A DNA stretch of 12,625 nucleotides from Octopus sinensis (GCF_006345805.1 NW_021825905.1:1-12625); one strand, 5' to 3'. Positions 1 to 12,625 are shown, counted from the stretch's first letter. Notes: generated from the letters alone by a model not told the origin. A program made the numbers and translations.

Positions 1-330
1 CTTGTGAATCCATATTGCTGTATACATCAATACAAGTTAACAGCCATGAAAAAGAATCATTGGAACTCGAAAATCTAAAATAATCAGAAAAAGGGAAATT
101 AATTATCGATATTACAGTTTTTGTAAAAATCCAAAAATATTACATAAATGATGAAAAAATCAGAAAAAGCACCTTTTAAGATCGATTAAATCCATTTGAA
201 ACCTTTCATTTGGTTTATTAGCAAAAACGTGAAATTCTGTATCATGGTCCTTTAAAGGTCCAGAAAAGCGGCAAATGTCACAGTTGATAACAACATCACG
301 GACGATTTCACGTTTAATAAAGCAGAGAAA
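1..330 (-). pseudogene. Integrase-2 core fragment (Ginger/KRBA2-like DDE integrase), runs off the window start
   Basis: Manual translation in a frame not shown in the ORF track: IKREIVRDVVINCDIC...ERFQMDLIDLKR, then after removing GT-AG segment 172-75, FSSSNDSFSWLLTCIDVYS. This parallels ORF 314-1528 (RDFVSKCIPC...ERFIADCIDLRRYSANNDNFKWILTVIDAYT). A 1-nt deletion follows IDVYS. Confidence 0.85.
75..172 (-). other. Spliceosomal intron (98 nt) in integrase-2
   Basis: GTGCTT...ATTTTAG. Removal joins AG|A (Arg) and gives LKRFSSSNDSFSW, collinear with LRRYSANNDNFKW of integrase-1. Confidence 0.75.
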
Positions 331-1498
331 CTTCTTCCACTACTAGAAATTGTTCCTTGCTAAAAAAACTAGTGAGTGGATATTTTCTTGTTTTTATATT
401 TTTATCGAAATCAATTTTAATTGTAACATTATCTCCAATTGTGATATCTTTTTTTCGAAAATTTTTGTTTGCGTCTTCTGTAACTTTTCTTTTATACTTT
501 TCATTATGAGTTTTTACTTCTAAGGATAATTCCGTTTCTTCCGATTCTGAGTTAATCTCTTCTTCTGCGCCTCCACATGGCAAAATATTAAAACCCGTTA
601 TTCCGTAAAATAGACTGGGTAAATAAAAAGAGACTAACCAAAATTGTGACTTTCCAGTTGCGCGATGACAAGTTATGTTGTATTTATACACCACCTTCTG
701 TAGAATTTCTCTCCACCTTATAGATTCTGTTGCGAACAAAGTCTTCCCCAACCAACGTTTGAGAGTTTGGTTATATCTTTCTATTTGTCCTTGAGATTGT
801 GGGTGCCTTGGTCTTCCATATATCGGAGTTATTTTCCAATCATCAAGAAGTTTTGAAACTTCTTTGTTGCGGAATTCCTTTCCATTGTCCGAATGAAAAT
901 AAATTGGAGGACCGACAGTCTGGAATAAACTCTCAATTGCATTATAGATGCTTTGTGATGTTTTATTCTCTAACGCGAATGACCATGCAAACTTTGTGTA
1001 TGCATCGATGACAGTAAGTATCCATTTAAAATTGTCATTATTTGCAGAATACCGCCTTAGATCTATACAGTCGGCGATAAATCTTTCGTATTTTTTTTCC
1101 ACAGAAATCATTCTGATATTTTCACAAGTACTTAAAGAGTTAAATGATTGGCACGGTATGCATTTTGATACAAAATCACGAATTATACATTGTTTAATTC
1201 CAATATATTTTTGAGAAATTAGATAACACATTTTATTGAACCCAGGATGTCCTTCATTATGTTCATCACAAAGAATAGATTGAATCCTTTCATGTTCAAA
1301 AGGACATATAACAATTTTATGTGTTCCTGATTTGGAATAAGAGAATAATTGATCGTCTGCAAAATGAAGAGTTTTACACTTTCTTCGAATTGTTCGCTTT
1401 TTGGTTTCTGTCATTCCAGGTTCATATTTTTTAGACAATAGATATAGTAAAATAGAATCATATTCTCCTTTGCTATTGATGTGTATCGAGCGCACCAT
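314..1498 (-). CDS. Integrase-1: Ginger/KRBA2/SCAND3-like DDE integrase-transposase, C-terminus probably truncated
   Basis: ORF 314-1528, first ATG at 1498. HHCC zinc motif (HNEGH...CIPC) and rve core with D (FIADCID), D (HSDNGKEF), E (QGQIERYNQ). The ORF ends where integrase-2 sequence resumes. Confidence 0.9.
   Translation of the reverse strand: MVRSIHINSKGEYDSILLYLLSKKYEPGMTETKKRTIRRKCKTLHFADDQLFSYSKSGTHKIVICPFEHERIQSILCDEHNEGHPGFNKMCYLISQKYIGIKQCIIRDFVSKCIPCQSFNSLSTCENIRMISVEKKYERFIADCIDLRRYSANNDNFKWILTVIDAYTKFAWSFALENKTSQSIYNAIESLFQTVGPPIYFHSDNGKEFRNKEVSKLLDDWKITPIYGRPRHPQSQGQIERYNQTLKRWLGKTLFATESIRWREILQKVVYKYNITCHRATGKSQFWLVSFYLPSLFYGITGFNILPCGGAEEEINSESEETELSLEVKTHNEKYKRKVTEDANKNFRKKDITIGDNVTIKIDFDKNIKTRKYPLTSFFSKEQFLVVEEVSLLY
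615..638 (-). other. Candidate in-frame 24-nt intron in integrase-1
   Basis: GTTAGTCTCTTTTTATTTACCCAG. Removal turns KSQFWLVSFYLPSLFYGITGFN into KSQFCLFYGITGFN, matching the recalled family spacing KSPFxLFxGxxGFN. Confidence 0.6.
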
Positions 1499-1536
1499 GA
1501 ACAGTTTAAAATTTATTCCCAAAATCATAATAATTT

Positions 1537-1563
1537 GGAGTGATAAATCCGATTTATCACTCC
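1537..1563. repeat. 27-bp near-perfect palindrome
   Basis: GGAGTGATAAATC-C-GATTTATCACTCC: 13-bp arms around a 1-nt centre. Confidence 0.95.
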
Positions 1564-1602
1564 GGACACTTAGAACTGGCCCGGACGCTATAACTTACGA
1601 CA

Positions 1603-1763
1603 ATAACTAATTTGTGACTCCCGTTTTCAACACGATAATAAAGGCAGTCATTTAATAGTATAAAAGATTTTGACTTGGTCAAAAGCCTTCTTTCCTAATA
1701 TCTATTTCTTGTCTTTACATCGATCCCTTGGAGAATTGACTTGATTTGATCATATTCATTGTT
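1603..1763 (-). pseudogene. Integrase N-terminal fragment (probably the 5' part of integrase-2)
   Basis: NNEYDQIKSILQGIDVKTRNRY*ERRLLTKSKSFILLNDCLYYRVENGSHKLVI. It aligns by eye with integrase-1 (EYDSIL...GTHKIVI) and the 11.6-kb fragment (DEYRLL...GNHKLVI). Internal TAG at 1695-1697. Confidence 0.8.
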
Positions 1764-2251
1764 ATTTCTTATATAACTTCTTTTGTTTTGGAAAACCAAA
1801 CGTGAACAATCCATAGTATATAGCAGCGGTTCTCAACCTTTTTTAGACTGGGGACCACTTTTGAACTATAAAATTTTGTGGGGACCACCTTAAATAAAAT
1901 AAACATTTTTTGGTATTAGCGCACAATTTTTGACCTCGTCAGGGCCAGGTTTAGACATGTTCGAATATTTATTATAAAAATAACATGAACATTATGAAAA
2001 TAACAGAAAATTTAATAGTAATTTAGTGAGATTTCTGATCTTGTTTGTTCAGAATAATTTTACTTATATCAGGCTCTATGTTCGACAAAGCTACTCGCAT
2101 ATCATCTTGTACCCGTAGTCTATTTCTATATTTTGTTTTTAGAAAAGTCAGACACGACATCGCCATTTCACAGTGATAAGTAGTGGGGAATGCAAGTATT
2201 GATTCCAATGCAGTTTTACTCAAAATGGGGAATTCTTTCGCCATCTGACAC

Positions 2252-2284
2252 CTAACAATAAAAAGTAATTATTAATGAGAATAC
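2252..2284 (-). other. 33-nt intron in Buster transposase
   Basis: GTATTCTCATTAATAATTACTTTTTATTGTTAG contains in-frame stops; removal gives LLDFW|CQMAKEFPIL and joins two ORF-track segments. Confidence 0.8.
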
Positions 2285-3266
2285 CAAAAATCTAATAATG
2301 AAGTACATTTGAAAATAATCTGAGCAGACTGATTACATTGAAGTTCAATCAAGCTCTGCTGAAAATTGAGTTCCTGATATTCTTTAAATGAGGTCAAGAA
2401 AGGTTGAACGATCCAGTTTGGAATTGGGTCTTCAACAGGAAAATAATCATCAAATTTTGTCTTGAGATTTTCCAGATGTTTGATTATCAGACTTAGAAGA
2501 ACATTATCCGGTGGGTTGTGTCCGAGATGATATTCAAGCATTGGGAACATTGATGTTATTCCTTTTTTTATTTTCATTATCCACAATAATAACTTTTTTT
2601 AAAAGCCATTATTATTTGAGTTTGGAAAATTCGATAATTAAGTGGTCGAGATCGAATATAGTTTATCACTTTTACAATAGTGTTTAGTGTTTCTCTTAAC
2701 GACGAACACATAGTTTTTGAACAAAGTGCATATTTGTGCAATGCACAATGTCTTGTAATAATATCAGGAACCAAATCCTTAATACGAGTAACAAGTCCAG
2801 ATTGATGACCAATCATCGCAGGTGCACCATCAGTACATATAGATCCAACTTTATCTCATTGGATTTTATTCGTCTTCATAAAATTGTCAAAAATATTAAA
2901 GATGTCCTCTCCACGAGTGTGTCCATCCATCTCCAAACAAAATAAAAACTCATCAATAATATTCTCATCATCAACAAAGCGAACATAGGACACAAGCTGA
3001 CAGACGTTAGAAATGTCAGTTGACTCGTCCAATTGAATACTTATTCTGCATTTACTTTTATTGATTCTTTCAATTAATTGCTCCAGGATATCAGATGACA
3101 ATTCTGAAATTCTACGGGAAATTGAATCGTTGGATAATGGTATGTCCTTAAGTTTGGTAACTGCATCCGGACCAAACAAAATTCGAGCCATTTCAAGAGC
3201 CACTGGTTTGATTAACTTTTCACCAGAATTATGTGCAGCTTTGTTTTTTGCGATAATCATTGAGAC

Positions 3267-3296
3267 CTATTTGTTTTAGATATAAATTAAAATTAC
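3267..3296 (-). other. 30-nt intron in Buster transposase
   Basis: GTAATTTTAATTTATATCTAAAACAAATAG contains in-frame stops; removal gives EASYA|VSMIIAKNK with no gap. Confidence 0.8.
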
Positions 3297-3685
3297 AGCA
3301 TATGATGCTTCTAATCTCGGTTATTCTTGAGATTTATTAAACCACTCAAGCTTTGGCTGTGAATCAAACTTCGTTCTTTTGACTTTAAAATATTCATGTG
3401 AGGAAGAATTTTCTGGGTGTACAGACTCTTTGTGGCGCCTAAGTTGAGAAGGTTTCAGTGAATTGTTTCCCAAAATTTTATGGCAAATCATGCATTTTGC
3501 CTTTAATTCATTATTTGGGGCAATGAATTTAGTGAATCCAAATTGTACGTAGGAATCCGACCAAAGACGACGATTCTTGTTAACCATAACTAGAATGATA
3601 AACCACGCTAATCAAATCAGATTAATTTCAATGTTTTTGATTTATACTTAATTGTACAATTAGTTTTAAATTTAATACAGTGAAA

Positions 3686-3799
3686 CCTCTCGAATCCGCT
3701 GCTTCTCGAATCCGCCGCTTCTCGAATCCGCTTGTTTTAATCAAAAATTTGAAATTTCCTATGAATGATTCTTGAATCCGCTTGTTTCTCGAATCCGCT
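3686..3799 (+). repeat. Tigger subterminal direct repeats (CTCGAATCCGC x4 plus one variant)
   Basis: Copies near 3689, 3705, 3721, 3772 (CTTGAATCCGC) and 3788; probable transposase-binding sites. Confidence 0.85.
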
Positions 3800-3894
3800 C
3801 CTCAAGTATTATGAAAAATAATTTTTTATCTAATTGTAAGTTAAATTAATTAACATTTTAAAATTTTCATTACACGTTAAATTGTATTTTTGTG

Positions 3895-4933
3895 ATGCTT
3901 CGCTGTGTTAGACTTTCTGTCAACGAAAAAATTTCTATACTACGTTATATTTCTGACAACCCATTCGTTTCTGCACCTCAAATTTCCAGGATTGTTTCTT
4001 CACGGTTAAAAAAGAAAATTTCTCCGAGAACTATAAACGACCTTAAATCAAAATCGGACCTTTTGAATAGGACTGACATCAAAAAATTAAACCTAACGAG
4101 AATTCCAAAACTCAAATTTAATGAAATTGATGTAGCGATGATAACATGGATTAACTTAATGGAATCTAGTGGAGCAATTCTATCAGATTCGATGTTAATT
4201 GCAAAAGCTCTTAAGTTTGGAAAAAATTTTCCAGAATTTAAAGCAAGTCGTGGGTGGCTAGAAAAGTTTAAATTACGAAATGGTATCAAGTTAAGAAAAT
4301 TACACGGAAACAGTGGATCAGTAAATCATGATGAAAAATCTATTACTGATTTTAATGAAACAATGAGTTTAAAAATTGAACAATATGGATTGGACAATGT
4401 TTATAATGCAGATGAAACTGGTGTTTTTTACAAGGCGATTCCTTCCAAAAGTGTGTGTACCAAATCACGGCCTGGAATAAAGTTGTCGAAGGATCGATTT
4501 TCGTTACTATTATGCGCAAATTGTTCTGGTTCCGATAAAAGAAGGCCTGTGATGATAGGAAGATTCAAAAGTCCAAGGTGTTTTAAAAATTTCAACATTG
4601 GAAAATATGTTACCTACACCCATTCCAATAAGGCATGGATGAACCGTGAAATTTTTAACAAGTGACTCAGTGATTTTGATTGTGAACTTGCAAAGAAAAA
4701 AAGAAAAATTCTACTTGTAATAGATCAATGTCCATCTCATCAAATTATTTAATAATTATACTTAGGAAACACTTATTGAAGAGGAATCAAATGAGAAAAA
4801 AGTTGATCTCTCAGAAGCCTTCAGAGCTCTAGAGATTATTAAAACTTATGCTTCTCAGGTAAATGCAGATATAGATGATCATGAAAATATTATGCGAATT
4901 GGGGAAATGTTAAGAAAATCAATTAAAAAATAA
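3895..4933 (+). pseudogene. Tigger/pogo (CENP-B-like, DDE_1) transposase pseudogene
   Basis: HTH-psq-like start, CENP-B HTH (FKASRGWLEKFKLRNGI), YNADETGVFYKAIP and KAWMNREIF. TGA at 4663 sits where Trp is expected, followed by LSDFD...LLVIDQCPSH. A deletion then precedes the C-terminal segment 4766-4933 (DLSEAFRALEIIKTY...KK*). Confidence 0.92.
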
Positions 4934-4936
4934 AAT

Positions 4937-4977
4937 TGGTCCAATTTAACGCATTTAGTGGTCCAATTTAACGCATT
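4937..4977. repeat. 19-bp direct repeat, period 22
   Basis: TGGTCCAATTTAACGCATT at 4937-4955 and 4959-4977. Confidence 0.9.
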
Positions 4978-5243
4978 CAAGCTTAGAATCTTTCCTTTTG
5001 TTATTACATCAAGCATTCGTAATTTTATCGAGGGTTAAAATTCTAAAAAAAGTAAAAAATGTCACACTCACCAGAATAAACGGTTTTTTATTGCGCTTGT
5101 GTAATTAAAATTTTCAATTTAGACATATAACACAATACAAAAAAATATAACAAAATTGATTTAGGGTTAATTTAATGATCCCTTTCGATATCGACAAAGA
5201 AAAATCACGGTTATCTTTGCAAAATATGCCGTATTTAAAAAAA

Positions 5244-5267
5244 CGGTTTTTTTTTGCACCTAGTGTA
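5244..5267. mobile_element. Orphan Tc1/mariner-like terminus
   Basis: CGGTTTTTTTTTGCACCTAGTG followed by TA, which reads TA-CACTAGGTGCAAAA on the minus strand; no partner in the window. Confidence 0.3.
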
Positions 5268-6653
5268 TAAAATATTATTTAAATTGCCTCTCGAATCCGC
5301 CGCCCACCAAAAAATTTTCTGGGGACCACGGTTGAGAACCCCTGACCTAAATGATGAAATTTCAAATAATTTAACCATTAAAAGAAACTACATCCCGAAA
5401 TATTCCTTTGAATCCATTTAAATATATAAATAAAGGTAAACCAAATAAAGACAACATCGCTACATAATGGATCAACAGCGTGGTCACACGTGCCTTAATT
5501 CATTAGTTTTGCCATTGAAATAAATAATTAAACAATATTTAATTAAAAATGAACTATATTTTAATTAAAACACAATTTTAAATATGATTAACTTAATATG
5601 TTACTCATGCTTATTTCATAAAAAAAATTAAATTTTAAATATCATTAGTTCTCATGCATTACATAAAAAAAGTCTCGAATAAGTTTCTGATCCAGAGGAA
5701 AAAATTCAAATAAAAAGACTATATTTCGCCACTTAATCCTACCAAAAATATTTAAATCCAAATAAAAATGTAATTGATATTTATTCCAGCTATCTCTTTT
5801 TGGCTTTTTATCCGCCAATTTCTGCCAGGCTCATGGCTGGAATACAGCGTCTGTGTACTCTACAGGTTTCACTGATGTCTCTTGGTGGCTACTTTCTCAC
5901 TCAGTCGCTCATTAATTTCCTCAATATCTATTAAAATAATCGTTACGTGATTCACCGCCGTAGTTGAAAGGTTGCCTTTACTGGAAACTCGATCTTGACG
6001 AATGACGCCACCATGATTCTAAGTACCAGATGAATCTCGGATGGAACGTGTTAAAATCCTAGTCTAAGAAACAGCCGAACGCCAATGAATAAAAATAAAA
6101 GAATTTAAAAAGAATGAGCACCTTCATTCATTCCGGATTAATTAGATTTACTAGCATACTCGTTCTCTCTCTTGTTCTTGCAAAACTGTGTGGCTGGCAC
6201 ATGCAAAATCTTAGGCACATACGTACAAACACTTGTTCACCTCCGGAGCAAACCTCAGGAATAGAATATGCAAGAAAGATTTAATCGTTGAAAAAGTTGG
6301 CCTCGAAATTAATCTGAAAAATATGAGATCATAATTTGAATCCTAGTCAAGCTGATTTGGGGTTTATCATAAATGAGTATGGACACACCATCATGACGTT
6401 AAAATAACTTGAAAGGAAGATCTATAAATGTGTGATCACCAATATTGAAATTCTGTAGGAAAAAATCTTCTTGTTTTACTGGACGCACATGACGAACTGT
6501 TCCTCCTAAAAAGTATATATTTCTGACTAGGCTTATGTATTTTATACGCTCTGCTTCATGTGTCCAATGAAAATTTAAATTATTTAAACTCAGAATGATA
6601 ACTCGAGTTTGTTCGAAATATTTGCAACAATAATTAGTTTATTGTAATATTTT

Positions 6654-6794
6654 TCTTCTGAAACCAAAAAACGGTGTCAGAAAGATGAAAAAAGAGTGTT
6701 TCAGAAAATGAGAAATTCTTTATTTTTGACAACGATCGATGAAAAAATACATTGTTTGATATGCAACCAGTTAATCGCTATACCAAAGAAACAT
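6654..6794 (+). pseudogene. GTF2IRD2/SPIN-type hAT transposase N-terminal (BED-like) fragment
   Basis: SSETKKRCQKDEKRVFQ...TTIDEKIHCLICNQLIAIPKKH, matching the recalled pattern KRK..E.RVFQEKWE..YF....K..CLIC...IA..K. Confidence 0.7.
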
Positions 6795-6814
6795 TAACGT
6801 ATAGAACATCTTTT

Positions 6815-6897
6815 GGACATGATGAAATCGGATTTATCAAAAAGAGCAGCCAAATACATTAATTAATTGGAGATACGGTTATTGGAATTTGGGGCAT
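6815..6897 (+). pseudogene. Possible IS630/Tc1 catalytic-domain scrap
   Basis: DEIGF followed, across a frameshift, by RYGY..LG; resembles the DE.GF...YG.S..G motif. Very short. Confidence 0.3.
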
Positions 6898-6900
6898 CTA

Positions 6901-6921
6901 CAGTGGCCGACAACAAAATTT
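6901..6921. mobile_element. Orphan Tc1/mariner-like TIR
   Basis: TA followed by CAGTGGCCGACAACAAAATTT; the inverted partner is not in the window. May be the 3' end of the element carrying 7143-7399. Confidence 0.4.
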
Positions 6922-7142
6922 AAAAGATTTAAAATAAAATTATTTGCAATAAGGAAATCAATACGAAAAAATACCTAGAAAATCGAGTTACGTCCATGAA
7001 AAAAGAAGTTTTAACTTTATGAGGCACGCGGGGAAATGTAAATTTATTAAATGTCACCGTCCGCTGAACGGACCACGCCTTTAAATGAAACAATATCAAA
7101 ATGTCATTTTCATTAATTCTATCCATATAAAATATGAAAAAC

Positions 7143-7399
7143 TTATGGAATTAACCGGCAAGTAATTTTCGGATTTGACTCGACCATTTCTTGCATATAA
7201 TCTCGTACGGTATTTGAATTTTTTGAATATCGAAAACCACCTCTTAAATCATCCTTAAAGCCTTCTTTTATCCACCTGTATGCAGTTGTTCTTTTATTCC
7301 GAGAGAACATGCAACTTGATTCCAATCCCCATCATTTTCGTAAACGGTCAACAAATTTTTTCTTTTTTCAGCTAATTCTTTCTTTTTATTAACGTTCAT
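7143..7399 (-). pseudogene. IS630/Tc1-like transposase N-terminal HTH fragment
   Basis: Across frameshifts: MNVNKKK...YENDGDWNQVACSLGIK(R)TTAYRWIKEGFKDDLRGGFRYSK...MVESNPKIT. Confidence 0.7.
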
Positions 7400-7430
7400 T
7401 AATAAATGAATTCAATAACCGACTTGAATC

Positions 7431-7566
7431 CTTTGAACTTGAAAATCCATATTGAATTTGGAAAATCCCACTTTGAACTTGGAAATCTCATATTAAATTT
7501 GGAAAATCCCACTTTGAAATAGGAAATCCCATATTGAATTTGAAATTCCCATATTGAACTTGAAAA
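7431..7566. repeat. Minisatellite, ~7 units of 19-21 bp
   Basis: Consensus (CTT/TAT)TGAA(C/T)TTGGAAA(A)TCCCA; the first five units alternate between CTTTG and TATTG/TATTA types. Confidence 0.92.
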
Positions 7567-7808
7567 GGTATAGATGTTGACATGGCACGTTATTTGTTGA
7601 GAGTTTATTTATTTTGTCTAAATAGAATAAATTCACTTTTACTTAAAATTTACTTTAATAATAAAAAAAATTTTCGAAGACAAGTAATCATGAACCTCAA
7701 TATCTAAACCAAGGGTTCTCAACCTTTTTAGCTCAAGGGCCAAATCGATATTAAGATTAGCTTGCGGGCCGCACAAAATATTTTATATATTTTTATATTT
7801 TCCATTTT

Positions 7809-8379
7809 ATTTTTTTTTCGCGAAAGTAGATTTTAATTGACAACGAAAATCGTTAAGTCCCAGCGGCGAGGACGCAGTGTGCGTTGCCCGAACAATAACC
7901 AGGCCGATGCGCTGGCGGAACCAGAGGCCCTCTCTCGTGTCCTTGAGCCTCCTCCCAATGGACTGCCCGACCTCGTTGAGGAACGAGTCAGTATCTTTCC
8001 CGCAGCTCCAGCGGTCTCCAGGGCGATTGCCGTGACGCGGTAGCGGTCCGCGAGATTTTGAAAAGGTATCCACAACGGTAACATCCCATACGAGGGCCTT
8101 CCCGACAAGTACGGGATATTGTCATCCCGTCAGGCCTTTTGCCATGCCCGTCGAGTCCGACCGGGTTCGAGGAGGCCCGAATGGCCCACCGATCGAGAAC
8201 GCCTTAACGATTTCATTAAGGGCCTTGTGTCTGTGGTACCTGCCTGCGCTCTCTTGCAGGAAGTGGGTGCAGTCCCTTTTCGTCAACGTCCTCACCGCAT
8301 CTGCAGCGGTGTTTTGCACAACATCCAGGCCGAGACGGTGAGCCACTCCGATGCGTATGGGAGATCGTCCTTTCTCTAA
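7809..8379 (-). mobile_element. 5'-truncated CRE-like non-LTR retrotransposon, RLE domain only, frameshifted
   Basis: IRIGVA.RLG...CRCGEDVDEKGLHPL.CKRSAGR..RH.ALNEIV...GKRPDGMTI...ALVWDVTVVDTF...IALETAGAAG...REGLWFRQRIG...GNAHCVLAAGT*. A9 tail at 7810-7818; candidate 9-bp TSD TTCCATTTT at 7800-7808 and 8380-8388. Confidence 0.85.
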
Positions 8380-8700
8380 TTCCATTTTTACTAAATATGA
8401 TTCGCATAAATATTAGATTCATATAATGCATTGTGTGTTATATTTCTGAATTGTATTGAGTAATTAATTCGTAAAAAATTAATAATGGACGCATTTTGAA
8501 CAATGCCGCCAGTTCTATATCATGTGTAAATTAATGAGTTCTAGTTGAAACTTTGCAGCGCATCCTTAATTTCACGCTGAATGGAGTTGCGAATATTTTC
8601 ATTAAAGGAAGGACTAATCTAAATCTAAAAATTAAAATTTTATATAAATGTACCCAAAACGTGCTTCAAATTGATTAAGGAAATCACCATTATGGATATG
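8380..8700 (-). pseudogene. GTF2IRD2-type hAT transposase C-terminal remnant (hATC region)
   Basis: With frameshifts: NQFEARFG|FRLVLPLMKIFATPFSV..IKDAAKFQLELINLH-DIELAALFK..LLIFYELI...YLCES.FSKM; continues as ENIK after the retro insertion. Confidence 0.7.
8625..8653 (-). other. Candidate 29-nt intron in the hAT remnant
   Basis: GTACATTTATATAAAATTTTAATTTTTAG. Removal links FEARFG to FRLVLPLMKIFATPF in frame; the unspliced frame stops. Confidence 0.6.
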
Positions 8701-8904
8701 TTTAACCTTAAGAATGAATAGTTAAATTTAAAACATTATAAAAATTAAAAAAGTTAGTTACTCTAGAGTCCGCCAAAAAAATCCCAGGGGCCGCATTTGA
8801 GAACCGCTGATCAAACCCAGAATCAATGGGAATGTCCGGCTTGAGCTAAAATTAATATTTTGATAGTAAAAAATCATCTCTTTTTATAAAACGTTTTTGG
8901 AAAT

Positions 8905-9165
8905 TTTGAATATTTTCAATCGCATTAGCAATTCAAAAGTAAAAAGAGAAACTTTTCAACTTTCTGTATTTATTTGAGGGATAATTGAAGCATTCTAATT
9001 TGTTAACAGTTGTCAAAATTATTCCAATGACAGGTACAGTGTCTGGAATTGACGTTTTAAAGCATTTAATGAAAACTTTTAATAAAATTCAATATCATAC
9101 TTTAAAAATTTGTTGAAATTACGACAGAAGCACTTCCATGCTCAAGAAAAAAAATTTTCTCCTTC
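8905..9165 (+). pseudogene. GTF2IRD2-type hAT transposase central fragment
   Basis: FSIAL...QLSVFI*GI...IIPMTGTVSGIDVLKHLMKTFNK...ITT.(G)A.SM, matching the recalled FS+ALDES...QL..F+RG+...PM.GTT.G.D+...TTDGA.SM pattern. Confidence 0.7.
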
Positions 9166-9199
9166 AAATTGAAATTCTTTGAAAATGGTTGTCAATATT

Positions 9200-9560
9200 C
9201 GTTCCACCTGTTTGGACACGTTCTCGCTAGGAAATCTCGCACTATCCGCCGCCAATCCTGGGCACGCTTCGAGGCAGGCCGAGGACCGAAAGATTCTCAA
9301 GTACGGCCACCTCTCCAACTCGCTGTTCTTTACTCCTATTGCCGTGGAGTCCTTCCGGGATCTTCGGCCCCAAGACACTCCGCTTCCTTCGCTCGCTCGG
9401 TCGACGGATTTCAAGGACAAGCCACAATCCAAGAGAGTATTCTTGGCTCCTGGAACGTCTGTCGATTGCTGTGATCCGAGGGAACGGCTTCGCCATTCAC
9501 AAAACTGGCCGGGGTCTCGTGAGGTCATTAATTAGCTTAGCTATCTTTTTACTTTTATAA
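9200..9560 (+). mobile_element. CRE-like retrotransposon RLE C-terminal fragment
   Basis: STCLDTFS...GHASRQAEDRKILKYGHL...FTPIAVES, frameshift, IFGPKTLRFLRSLGRR...PREYSWLLERLSIAVIRGN. No tail or TSD recognised. Confidence 0.8.
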
Positions 9561-9600
9561 ATCACATTACAGTCAAATTCCGCCCAACAACAACACCCCG

Positions 9601-9870
9601 CTTAAATTGTTTTTTCTTCCGAAAACACAACATCTTTGATTCAACCTCTAGACATGGGTATAATAAAATGTTTTAAAGTATATTACACAAACTTCCTAAT
9701 GGAATTTATGTTCGATTTGAAAGAAGATACAACAATTATCCTAATCTGTGAAAAATATAGAATCGCGAATTTTATAATGGAATTGGGATAGAGGACAACA
9801 ACGATATTAGAAACGTATGAAATGATAGATAAGTTGGAAAATGTAGCGCAAAATACATATTTATGAGTTT
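9601..9870 (+). pseudogene. Second pogo/Tigger DDE_1 transposase fragment
   Basis: LKLFFLP(K)N, frameshift, TTSLIQPLDMGIIKCFKVYY, then ILETYEMIDK.W..V.QNT; this is the FLPPNTTS..QPLD motif that holds the third catalytic Asp. Confidence 0.8.
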
Positions 9871-10720: not shown

Positions 10721-11586
10721 TTTTTTTGTTGACAATTTTTAAACGAAAAAAAATCTAGCTATTAAGTACTGGCTTTTTTTTCAACGAGTACAAAATGTCA
10801 CTGAAAAGTATTATAAATCGTCACGCTCCGGCAGCCAGTATCGCGTGCGTGTTGCCACGAAGAACTGCAATTCCGATACGTTGGCGAAGCCAATACCCCT
10901 CGCGACTGTCCCTCCTTCGTTTAGCCAGCATCGCCCCAATTTCCTTGAGAAATTCCGCGGTTTTGGATCCCACTACACCAGACGTCTCTATCGAGATTGG
11001 GACAAAACGGAAAAGTTTTCCGATCTCCAAATACTTAGATATCTTCGCCTTTTCTGCTGCATTAGCAGCCCAACCGGACGAATGAATATTCCGAAGAATC
11101 GTGGACTGGGAGAACGTGTCTACGCACGTCGCATCCCATGCGAGTGATTTTCCCTGGGAGTACGGGAAAAGAGTTATCCCATCGGGCCTTCTGCCATCTT
11201 CCCGGTCAAGCCCGACGGGTTCCAGGTGTGCTGGAAATCCTGCGCTCTCGAGGGCCCGTCGTATTATGTCGTTGAGTGCGGCATGGCGGGGAGCGCGACC
11301 TGCACTCCTCTTGCAAGACAAAGGGTGTAGTACTGGCTTGCAGGATTGAAAGACAATTCCCACGTAAAGCAGCCAGCGAGATCTTTTGAATAAGGAATAT
11401 AAATTCCCTGAGATCTCTGGAGCGATGGATGCACAGACAGCCAAGTTTCTTAAGATGAGCAAGCGTCTTGGCCCCAAAAACACAGGGAATCTCGACGGCA
11501 ATTGCCCAAAAGCAAAATCGATCGCGAAAATCTTTGTATTTTGTTAGTTTCGCGAATTCGGCTTTCCCGGCCGATTTTTTGGCTAG
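10721..11586 (-). mobile_element. CRE-like RLE fragment A (older copy, split by copy B)
   Basis: Frame not in the ORF track: LAKKSAGKAEFAKLTKYKDFRDRFCFWAIAVEIPCVFGAKTLAHLKKLG...DLREFIFLIQKISLAALRGNCLSILQAST. Its TAA lies beyond copy B at 10762-10764, with an A7 run at 10721-10727. Confidence 0.8.
10776..11328 (-). mobile_element. 5'-truncated CRE-like retrotransposon copy B with intact RLE reading frame
   Basis: HPLSCKRSAGRAPRHAALNDIIRRAL...LEPVGLDREDGRRPDGITLFPY...LAWDATCVDTF...AEKAKISKY...IETSG...RQRIGIAVLRGN...AAGA* (PD-(D/E)xK-type). A 40-nt 3' UTR, an A8 tail and an 11-bp TSD AGTACTGGCTT at 10765-10775 and 11329-11339. Confidence 0.9.
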
Positions 11587-12113: not shown

Positions 12114-12625
12114 CAGTGGTTCTTAACCTTTATTTTTGTACCACCACCTTGGAATTTTTTTCGCCCCTCCAATTTTTTTATTTCATTAGTAAAAATTTTT
12201 ATTTAAAAAATAAGAGTTTTAATGAGATCCTTGTGGTTGATGAAGATTGACAAGTTTTTCAAAATTTGTATTTCTTTTCGTAAGTGTAATTCTAATGTCA
12301 AAATTCTTTTTTAATTCTAAAAAAAAGTCTGGCTTTTTTTCAATTGAATTATGATGTTTTTGCTTTAAATGTTCAATCAAACGAGACGGTTTCATTGCCT
12401 CATTCGAAAAAATTGTACCACATTGAAGACAAAGTGGTTTATTAGGATCTTGAGGATCTTTAATAAATCCAAGAGAAATATATTCATCTTTATACATTCT
12501 GACTTTTTTCTGAACACGACCCATAAAGACAACTAGAAATCACGGTTAGAAATTTAAATAAAATATGATAAAAATATCATATTATTAATAAATATTATTA
12601 GACTCGATTATGTATCTTTATTTTT
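12114..12625 (-). mobile_element. Second Buster-type hAT, deletion derivative, other end outside the window
   Basis: TIR CAGTGGTTCTTAACC at 12114, preceded by CATTAAAG (central TA); the transposase N-terminus is truncated about 100 bp from this end. Confidence 0.75.
12219..12524 (-). pseudogene. Buster/ZBED5-like transposase BED zinc-finger fragment
   Basis: RMYKDEYISLGFI...PLCLQC...FSNEAMKPSRLIEHLKQKH...FFLELK. Confidence 0.88.

Follow-up and report, generated by a model that had tools for sequence, protein, structure and literature searches.

The stretch analysed here (hereafter the window) comprises 12.6 kb of DNA labelled Octopus sinensis (12,625 nucleotides, NW_021825905.1 of GCF_006345805.1) and consists entirely of nested transposon remains, in which five short segments starting with GT and ending with AG interrupt the transposase or integrase genes of DNA transposons. 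Judging from comparisons with homologues, these five segments are very probably true introns. The best overall explanation, which we consider likely, is that the host is a dicyemid and that its transposon genes carry spliceosomal introns of the host's own type. The window would then be transposon-dense nuclear DNA of an animal with micro-introns, most probably Dicyema, sequenced either in its own right or as a contaminant of an octopus assembly, and the GT...AG segments would be ordinary U2-type spliceosomal introns of host-characteristic size. They would lie within the transposase or integrase genes of cut-and-paste elements (two Ginger-like families, a Buster-clade hAT and a second hAT), and pre-mRNA splicing would be required to obtain a functional enzyme.

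Candidate introns in four transposon genes

An earlier note on this DNA had described five GT...YAG segments. All of them are present, all on the minus strand, and their exact coordinates could be confirmed:

75-172, minus strand: 98-nt segment, GTGCTT...TTTTAG, in Ginger-like integrase B
615-638, minus strand: 24-nt segment, GTTAGT...CCCAG, in Ginger-like integrase A; in frame and stop-free
2252-2284, minus strand: 33-nt segment, GTATTC...GTTAG, in hAT-1; in frame, with two TAA codons inside
3267-3296, minus strand: 30-nt segment, GTAATT...AATAG, in hAT-1; in frame, with stops inside
8625-8653, minus strand: 29-nt segment, GTACAT...TTTAG, in the hAT-2 fragment

The sequences used for comparison include five contigs of GCA_006345805.1, all labelled Octopus sinensis: L001 (VCDQ01013302.1), L002 (VCDQ01000240.1), L003 (VCDQ01005863.1), L004 (VCDQ01009711.1) and L005 (VCDQ01009435.1). 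The interrupted genes and the elements to which they belong are as follows (TIR, terminal inverted repeat):

1-313, minus strand: Ginger-like integrase B fragment, reaching from the zinc-finger end as far as the first DDE aspartate, identified by translation and alignment; the window edge cuts the gene
314-1528, minus strand: Ginger-like integrase A, with H2C2 zinc finger and rve DDE core; it lacks ~25 amino acids at the C-terminus
1812-3677, minus strand: hAT-1 element body, from the 3' TIR CAGCGGTTCTCAACC to the subterminal 5' region; 98-99% identity to L001-L005
2023-3587, minus strand: hAT-1 (Buster/ZBED8/FAM200-like) transposase coding region, decayed
5310-5344, minus strand: hAT-1 5' TIR, now apart from the body, with a pogo-bearing insertion (3678-5309) between the two
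8518-8712, minus strand: hAT-2 (FAM200/GTF2IRD2-like) C-terminal coding fragment, with an extra frameshift near 8560

A GT at the 5' end and an AG at the 3' end mark all five window segments as well as four others on related loci. In the case of the 24-, 30-, 33- and 98-nt segments, removal yields both the correct frame and gap-free collinearity with intron-less homologues. The proposal that every removal restores a frame or motif thus stands for these four, while for the 29-nt segment, in a decayed fragment, the support is weak (E = 2e-4). A GT...AG at a fixed start and with a fixed length of 20-35 nt has a chance probability of P ~0.002 in the window sequence; even if each gap is granted a few equivalent placements, we estimate that four to five of these would arise by chance with a probability of <1e-8. 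The 5' sites are as loose as had been noted before, with no consensus beyond GT and AG in the transposon introns. YTNAY-like motifs occur close to the 3' ends, yet they are expected by chance at a guanine-plus-cytosine (GC) content of 7-33%.

The Ginger-like integrases

Integrase A contains the Pfam domains PF17921 (Integrase_H2C2) and PF00665 (rve). Among the best 150 homologues, most are stand-alone proteins of 350-500 amino acids, several of them on contigs of ~2 kb, and the integrase is encoded alone, without reverse transcriptase or gag, which is the mark of Ginger elements. The name "Ginger-like" is provisional; neither copy has both of its ends in the window, A being truncated at 314, where integrase B adjoins its truncated 3' end, and B running off the edge.

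The 24-nt segment of integrase A (GC 0.33) is an exact 8-residue insertion that splits the conserved motif SPFxLxxG. It is missing in all four homologues of the first alignment. A full HMMER scan of 1.8 billion proteins gave, among its best hits, 96 homologues spanning both flanks, and none of the 96 has the insertion. In integrase B, removing the 98-nt segment joins DLIDLKR to FSSSNDSFSWLLTCID and gives a gap-free alignment through the region of the first catalytic aspartate. At each end of this segment stands the same 12-nt direct repeat, CTTTTTCTGATT, without a mismatch (16 of 2000 shuffles attained as much), and when the repeat is collapsed a core of 22 nt is left, as the earlier note had it. 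With its full length the segment is an outlier against the host introns described below, which is explained by a 76-nt internal duplication or insertion. The retained introns would argue against copying of the Ginger-like elements via spliced RNA.

A third Ginger-like family, on L003, contains a frame-shifting GT-AG segment of 26 nt (12135-12160) and one of 27 nt (12393-12419) that is in frame and holds two stops. The intron positions in this family differ from those in integrases A and B.

The Buster-clade family hAT-1

The hAT-1 transposase has a Pfam zf-BED domain, and copy P0007 also matches PF14291, PF27073 and PF27046. The top named matches are ZBED8-like, FAM200, ZBED5 and SCAND3 proteins, a full-length alignment with homologues was obtained, and the BED zinc finger, RNase-H-like catalytic region and hAT C-terminal region are those of the Buster clade. 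Copies at 98-99% identity occur on the five contigs L001-L005 (21-522 kb), of which L001 and L002 are allelic partners, leaving four independent copies besides that of the window. On L001 the element is bounded by the TIRs CAGCGGTTCTCAACC ... GGTTGAGAACCGCTG and flanked on both sides by the 8-bp target-site duplication GGCTATAC; the flanks of the window copy do not match each other because the 3678-5309 insertion breaks the element.

Both window segments are exact insertions, of 10 residues (30 nt) and 11 residues (33 nt), and removal of the former gives EASYA|VSMIIAK. The earlier note had suggested alignment to intron-less homologues, and this uncovered residues neither at the 24-nt site of integrase A (in any of the 96) nor at the 30- and 33-nt sites in any of 12 Buster/FAM200/ZBED homologues. 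All hAT-1 copies that retain the region keep both segments, the 33-nt one in identical form throughout; one copy other than L004 has a 2-nt deletion within the 30-nt segment. A third segment, of 27 nt (L001 10884-10910, GTAAAA...TAAAG), is in frame, stop-free and AT-rich (GC 0.07). It is an exact 9-residue insertion, missing in 12/12 homologues, in a spacer that is otherwise of invariant length, and it lies in the region that a 295-bp deletion (2618/2619) has removed from the window copy.

Apart from these segments, the window copy has decayed through a TAA at 3321-3323, a TGA at 2856-2858, the 295-bp deletion and a T7 run at 2594-2600. The nonsense codons and the deletion are private to the window copy, the sister copies having TGG and GAT AAA at the two codons. 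Once its 30-, 27- and 33-nt segments are removed, the L004 copy encodes a 590-residue transposase ending in QKSH*, as its relatives do; unspliced, its sole stops lie inside the 30- and 33-nt segments. A conceptually spliced hAT-1 query retrieves a 97% identical protein annotated in Octopus sinensis and encoded on one of the five contigs.

Two further features of the family were observed. The homopolymer at 2594-2600 (T7 on the plus strand, A7 in the gene) causes a one-base frameshift common to the window, L001/L002 and L003, and in L004 and L005 it has eight bases and the frame is open; the frameshift may reflect true variation within the family or a mistake in the long-read assembly. On L001, the 5' subterminal part of the hAT-1 copy contains a 126-bp tandem duplication (9389-9514 / 9516-9641, 96% identity).

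The hAT-2 fragment

Removal of the 29-nt segment joins FEARFG to FRLVLPLMKIFATPFS, and a related hAT frame at L001 12703-13221 matches the spliced peptide on both sides of the junction (E = 2e-4). A Pfam search with the short hAT-2 peptides, spliced and unspliced, gave no match for either. We regard the 29-nt segment as a plausible intron candidate.

Host genes on linked contigs have introns of the same size

The contigs L001 and L002, linked to the window by the hAT-1 family, carry cellular genes in which GT-AG segments of the same size are found. The RPS8 gene on L002 has four, of 25, 24, 29 and 27 nt, and its spliced product of 208 residues matches the eS8 protein of solved ribosomes over the full length (E = 4e-67). 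The second of these introns (24 nt) is stop-free and lies within a conserved stretch. In an SK potassium channel gene on L001 and L002, a 26-nt GT-AG segment has to be removed to reach the conserved C-terminal helix. In a search of 5.8 billion proteins this channel is 30-38% identical to any other SK channel, its own allele aside, a divergence that points to a fast-evolving organism other than octopus. An exact look-up of the spliced RPS8 and SK proteins found nothing on record.

The micro-introns in RPS8 and SK therefore indicate that the organism to which L001 and L002 belong splices micro-introns and is not octopus. Octopus as the host of the linked contigs, suggested by the 97% match to an O. 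sinensis protein, is ruled out by the same introns. The central inference of the earlier note is supported here: host introns on a contig bearing hAT-1 and on its allelic partner are short (24-29 nt in RPS8, 26 nt in SK), in keeping with a host that splices micro-introns and harbours transposons with introns of its own size. The transposon introns measure 24-33 nt (mean 28), compared with 24-29 nt (mean 26) for the host-gene introns, and both sets are AT-rich and without consensus beyond GT and AG.

Other sequences on these contigs were less informative. A TPR-like gene on L005 was considered as a further source of host introns and left unused, its candidate frame junctions being ambiguous without homologues; a Tc1-like copy on L004, considered as another carrier of micro-introns, is truncated and uninformative. 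L001 also holds a 227-residue acidic frame of degenerate repeats at 7125-7808 (DEYYDSNELNM...). Several RefSeq entries on the linked contigs look mis-assigned and mis-modelled, including the SK channel XP_029656198.1 and, to all appearance, XP_029654905.1, XP_029656197.1, XP_029656764.1, XP_029654959.1 and XP_029653726.1 (ZBED8-like).

A dicyemid as the most probable host

Dicyemids had been among the candidate hosts listed in the earlier note, and they are favoured here through the linked O. sinensis contigs with micro-introns in cellular genes. Dicyema japonicum, with a median intron of ~27 nt, has been collected from the kidneys of O. sinensis and has a genome of 67.5 Mb with 49% repeats and 36.7% GC (PMC6736024). 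Dicyemid introns have a median of 27 nt, two thirds of them are shorter than 30 nt, and their splice motifs are reduced (PMC6543705); among animals, introns below 30 nt are known only from myxobolid myxozoans and D. japonicum (PMC13644364). The linked contigs show what Dicyemida would lead one to expect, namely housekeeping genes with introns of ~25 nt, the standard genetic code and genes of animal type. The host is thus most probably a dicyemid (Dicyema), a parasite of the O. sinensis kidney, and we hold it likely that the window itself is dicyemid DNA.

A reassigned genetic code was considered for the in-frame TGA at tryptophan positions (2856-2858 in hAT-1, 4663-4665 in the pogo gene) and for the TAA at 3321-3323, and was rejected, the sister hAT copies having TGG and GAT AAA. 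TAA terminates both the RPS8 and the hAT gene where homologues predict, and the TGA at the conserved tryptophan of hAT-1 reads as G-to-A decay rather than a variant code.

Several observations weigh against the overall explanation by dicyemid-type introns. The window has no cellular gene, and it is tied to the micro-intron organism through shared transposon families, namely hAT-1 (98-99%) and a long interspersed nuclear element (LINE) family (86-90%). The dicyemid assignment was made from co-occurrence with O. sinensis and from the literature. The 24- and 27-nt segments keep the frame open without a stop and might conceivably be translated as coding insertions. The 29-nt case is the weakest of the five, sitting in a frame-decayed fragment with a further frameshift ~100 nt downstream, and in the otherwise intact L004 copy the 30-nt segment ends in AT, not AG. 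Finally, no near-identical spliced proteins were present in the protein collections, and an exact look-up of the spliced hAT-1 protein found nothing on record.

Alternative explanations

The alternative that survives best applies to part of the set: the stop-free segments, 24 nt in Ginger-like integrase A and 27 nt in hAT-1, could be translated insertions, with introns confined to the segments that contain stops or shift the frame. Both are multiples of three without an in-frame stop, and the frame stays open unspliced. However, both are bounded by GT and AG, are rich in AT (GC 0.33 and 0.07) and match the others in size class. The 24-nt segment splits SPFxLxxG, where none of the 96 homologues has extra residues, the 27-nt segment splits a spacer that is invariant in length in all 12 homologues, and RPS8 has an equivalent stop-free intron of 24 nt in a conserved stretch. 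We consider translated insertions unlikely.

It is also quite unlikely that the DNA belongs to another host with micro-introns, such as a ciliate, a microsporidian or a myxozoan. One Ginger-like homologue is microsporidian (29% identity). Against this, the TAA stop in RPS8 and hAT rules out those ciliate codes in which TAA encodes an amino acid, and the TGA at the conserved tryptophan is TGG in sister copies. The transposons (Buster hAT, pogo and a LINE bearing reverse transcriptase) are typical of animals and, like the TAA stops, do not suit a ciliate or another protist, and the DNA was sequenced together with O. sinensis, whose kidney parasites are dicyemids; myxobolids, the sole other animals with such introns, infect fish and annelids (PMC13644364).

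A third possibility is that the window is true octopus DNA into which transposons with micro-introns were horizontally transferred from a dicyemid, the octopus spliceosome being unable to remove their introns. The nearest relatives lie in an assembly labelled Octopus sinensis, the window is purely transposons so that its own host is not directly evident, and octopus and parasite live in intimate contact. Yet the L001/L002 locus is not octopus, given its housekeeping introns of 24-29 nt and very divergent SK channel; the five clustered hAT-1 proteins are all on contigs of 21-522 kb and none is on a chromosome-scale scaffold; and the window shares a second family, the LINE (86-90% identity), with the small hAT-1-bearing contigs L003 and L005. 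Such a transfer appears very improbable.

That the segments are chance indels in dead copies, with coincidental GT and AG ends and no introns at all, is the least credible reading: decay is plain in the window copies (the TAA at 3321-3323, the TGA at 2856-2858, the 295-bp deletion, the homopolymer frameshift) and the hAT-2 frameshift is close to the 29-nt segment, but GT and AG bound the segments throughout (P ~0.002 each), the segments are exact insertions against every homologue and are common to all 98-99% copies that retain the region, whereas the decay mutations differ among copies, the L004 copy is intact apart from them, and their size equals that of the host-gene introns on the same contig pair.

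Intron gain and comparison with known systems

Returning to the dicyemid-type introns, we infer that the segments are spliced, and comparison of their positions suggests that each family acquired its own within this lineage. No intron position is common to two families and none is occupied in homologues from elsewhere, so that separate gain is a more parsimonious account than a shortening of older introns. The earlier note had left open whether transposon introns were gained or shrank to host size. Gain is favoured, each family having positions of its own at which no homologue has residues or a gap, and shrinkage is the less parsimonious of the two. LINEs, being copied from RNA, cannot keep introns; no such GT...AG segments were noticed in the LINE frames inspected, which were not searched systematically.

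Introns are familiar from other cut-and-paste elements. The P element has three, the third of which is spliced only in the germ line, and maize Ac has four; these introns are larger, at ~50-100 nt or more, and their splicing is known to be regulated. By analogy, a transposase mRNA that needs host splicing would offer a possible control point, at which splicing might, as the earlier note proposed, gate transposase expression. Transposon-driven gain is exemplified by introner-like elements in some algae, fungi and other eukaryotes, repeats whose copies resemble one another and often come with target-site duplications. The present case resembles introners in the lineage-specific gain of many new introns. 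It differs in that the nine transposon introns show no evident mutual resemblance on inspection, each occurring once per source sequence.

The closest likeness is to the micro-introns of dicyemid cellular genes (Lu et al. 2019, PMC6736024; Zverkov et al. 2019, PMC6543705; Hadjez et al. 2026, PMC13644364), which share the GT-AG ends, the length of 22-33 nt, the AT-richness, the very weak 5' and 3' consensus and the lack of a clear polypyrimidine tract. At the branch position of micro-introns only weak A residues have been reported (PMC13644364). Known dicyemid introns sit in cellular genes, whereas the present ones lie in transposon genes at positions unmatched in homologues, and introns in transposon genes go unmentioned in these three dicyemid studies. 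Dicyemid exon/intron structure has been called conservative (Ogino et al. 2010, as cited in PMC6543705). Myxobolid myxozoans are alike in their median of 22-27 nt, their reduced splice motifs and their repeat-rich, compact genomes as parasitic animals (PMC13644364), but they are cnidarian parasites of fish and annelids and nothing ties them to the octopus sample. Ciliate introns, of ~25 nt in Paramecium and 15-16 nt in Stentor according to work cited in PMC13644364, are of a similar size class, and those that are multiples of three often contain stops, as do the 30- and 33-nt introns of hAT-1; ciliates differ in genetic code, TAA being a stop here, and in gene and transposon content.

Other elements in the window

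The window is AT-rich (~30% GC) with three GC-rich islands (45-51% vs 30% background) at 7781-8385, 9142-9535 and 10821-11501. The islands derive from the 3' parts of LINE-type retrotransposons and share 86-90% identity with L003, in which a reverse-transcriptase domain is found upstream. The LINE C-terminal domain, with the motif RPDG...WD.T, had no Pfam match.

The pogo transposase (3892-4740) seems to be split, its frame ending in ...CPSHQI (~4740) and resuming as PPNNNTPLKLFFLPKTQHLLIQPLDMGII at ~9566 (to ~9790). TCAAATT occurs at each of the two breaks, a sign that ~4.8 kb may have been inserted into pogo. The gene has an in-frame TGA at a conserved tryptophan (4663-4665), and a separate pogo C-terminal tail is found at ~4770-4930. 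Adjoining the pogo 5' end, a 16-nt repeat, TCTCGAATCCGCTGCT, occupies 3688-3732, with one more copy of the motif at ~5285-5300. A tandem repeat with a period of ~20 or 41 nt (TTGAACTTGGAAAATCCCATA) lies at 7431-7566.

Motifs resembling hAT termini occur at 7721-7735, 8785-8812 and 12115-12130 (GGTTCTCAACC / GAGAACCGCTG / CAGTGGTTCTTAACC) and mark at least two more internally deleted hAT elements. A BED-finger N-terminal frame, at 12219-12524, belongs to the one that runs from 12115 onward. Searches of a phage collection and of Rfam, as well as a tRNA scan, were all without a match, and an exact look-up of a 404-residue reading frame of the window found nothing on record.

Implications

Introns of 24-33 nt are the established norm for the probable host, and to that extent the finding is largely ordinary. 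What is new, in a modest way, is that they occur in transposon genes and seem to have been gained recently within individual families. We found no account in the literature of dicyemid contamination in the octopus assembly or of introns in dicyemid transposons. A parasite with micro-introns seems to be the source of at least two allelic contigs of the public assembly GCA_006345805.1, and probably of three others bearing the same transposon, and several RefSeq gene models on these contigs were unable to handle such introns, a matter of relevance to users of the assembly and of protein databases.

The transposons of this lineage contain at least nine micro-introns in five families, and the hAT family with three of them is still 98-99% identical between copies. 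It is conceivable, though we put it forward tentatively, that dicyemid DNA transposons have repeatedly acquired new spliceosomal micro-introns. If so, a spliceosome that takes almost any AT-rich GT...AG segment of ~22-35 nt would let small coding insertions easily become introns, and the 98-nt case would represent a later step, in which an intron grew by insertion. The transposon families would then allow one to date intron gain that is still under way in an animal. Such gain is seldom observed in animals, and a genome-wide survey of dicyemid transposons could make both its rate and its mechanism testable.

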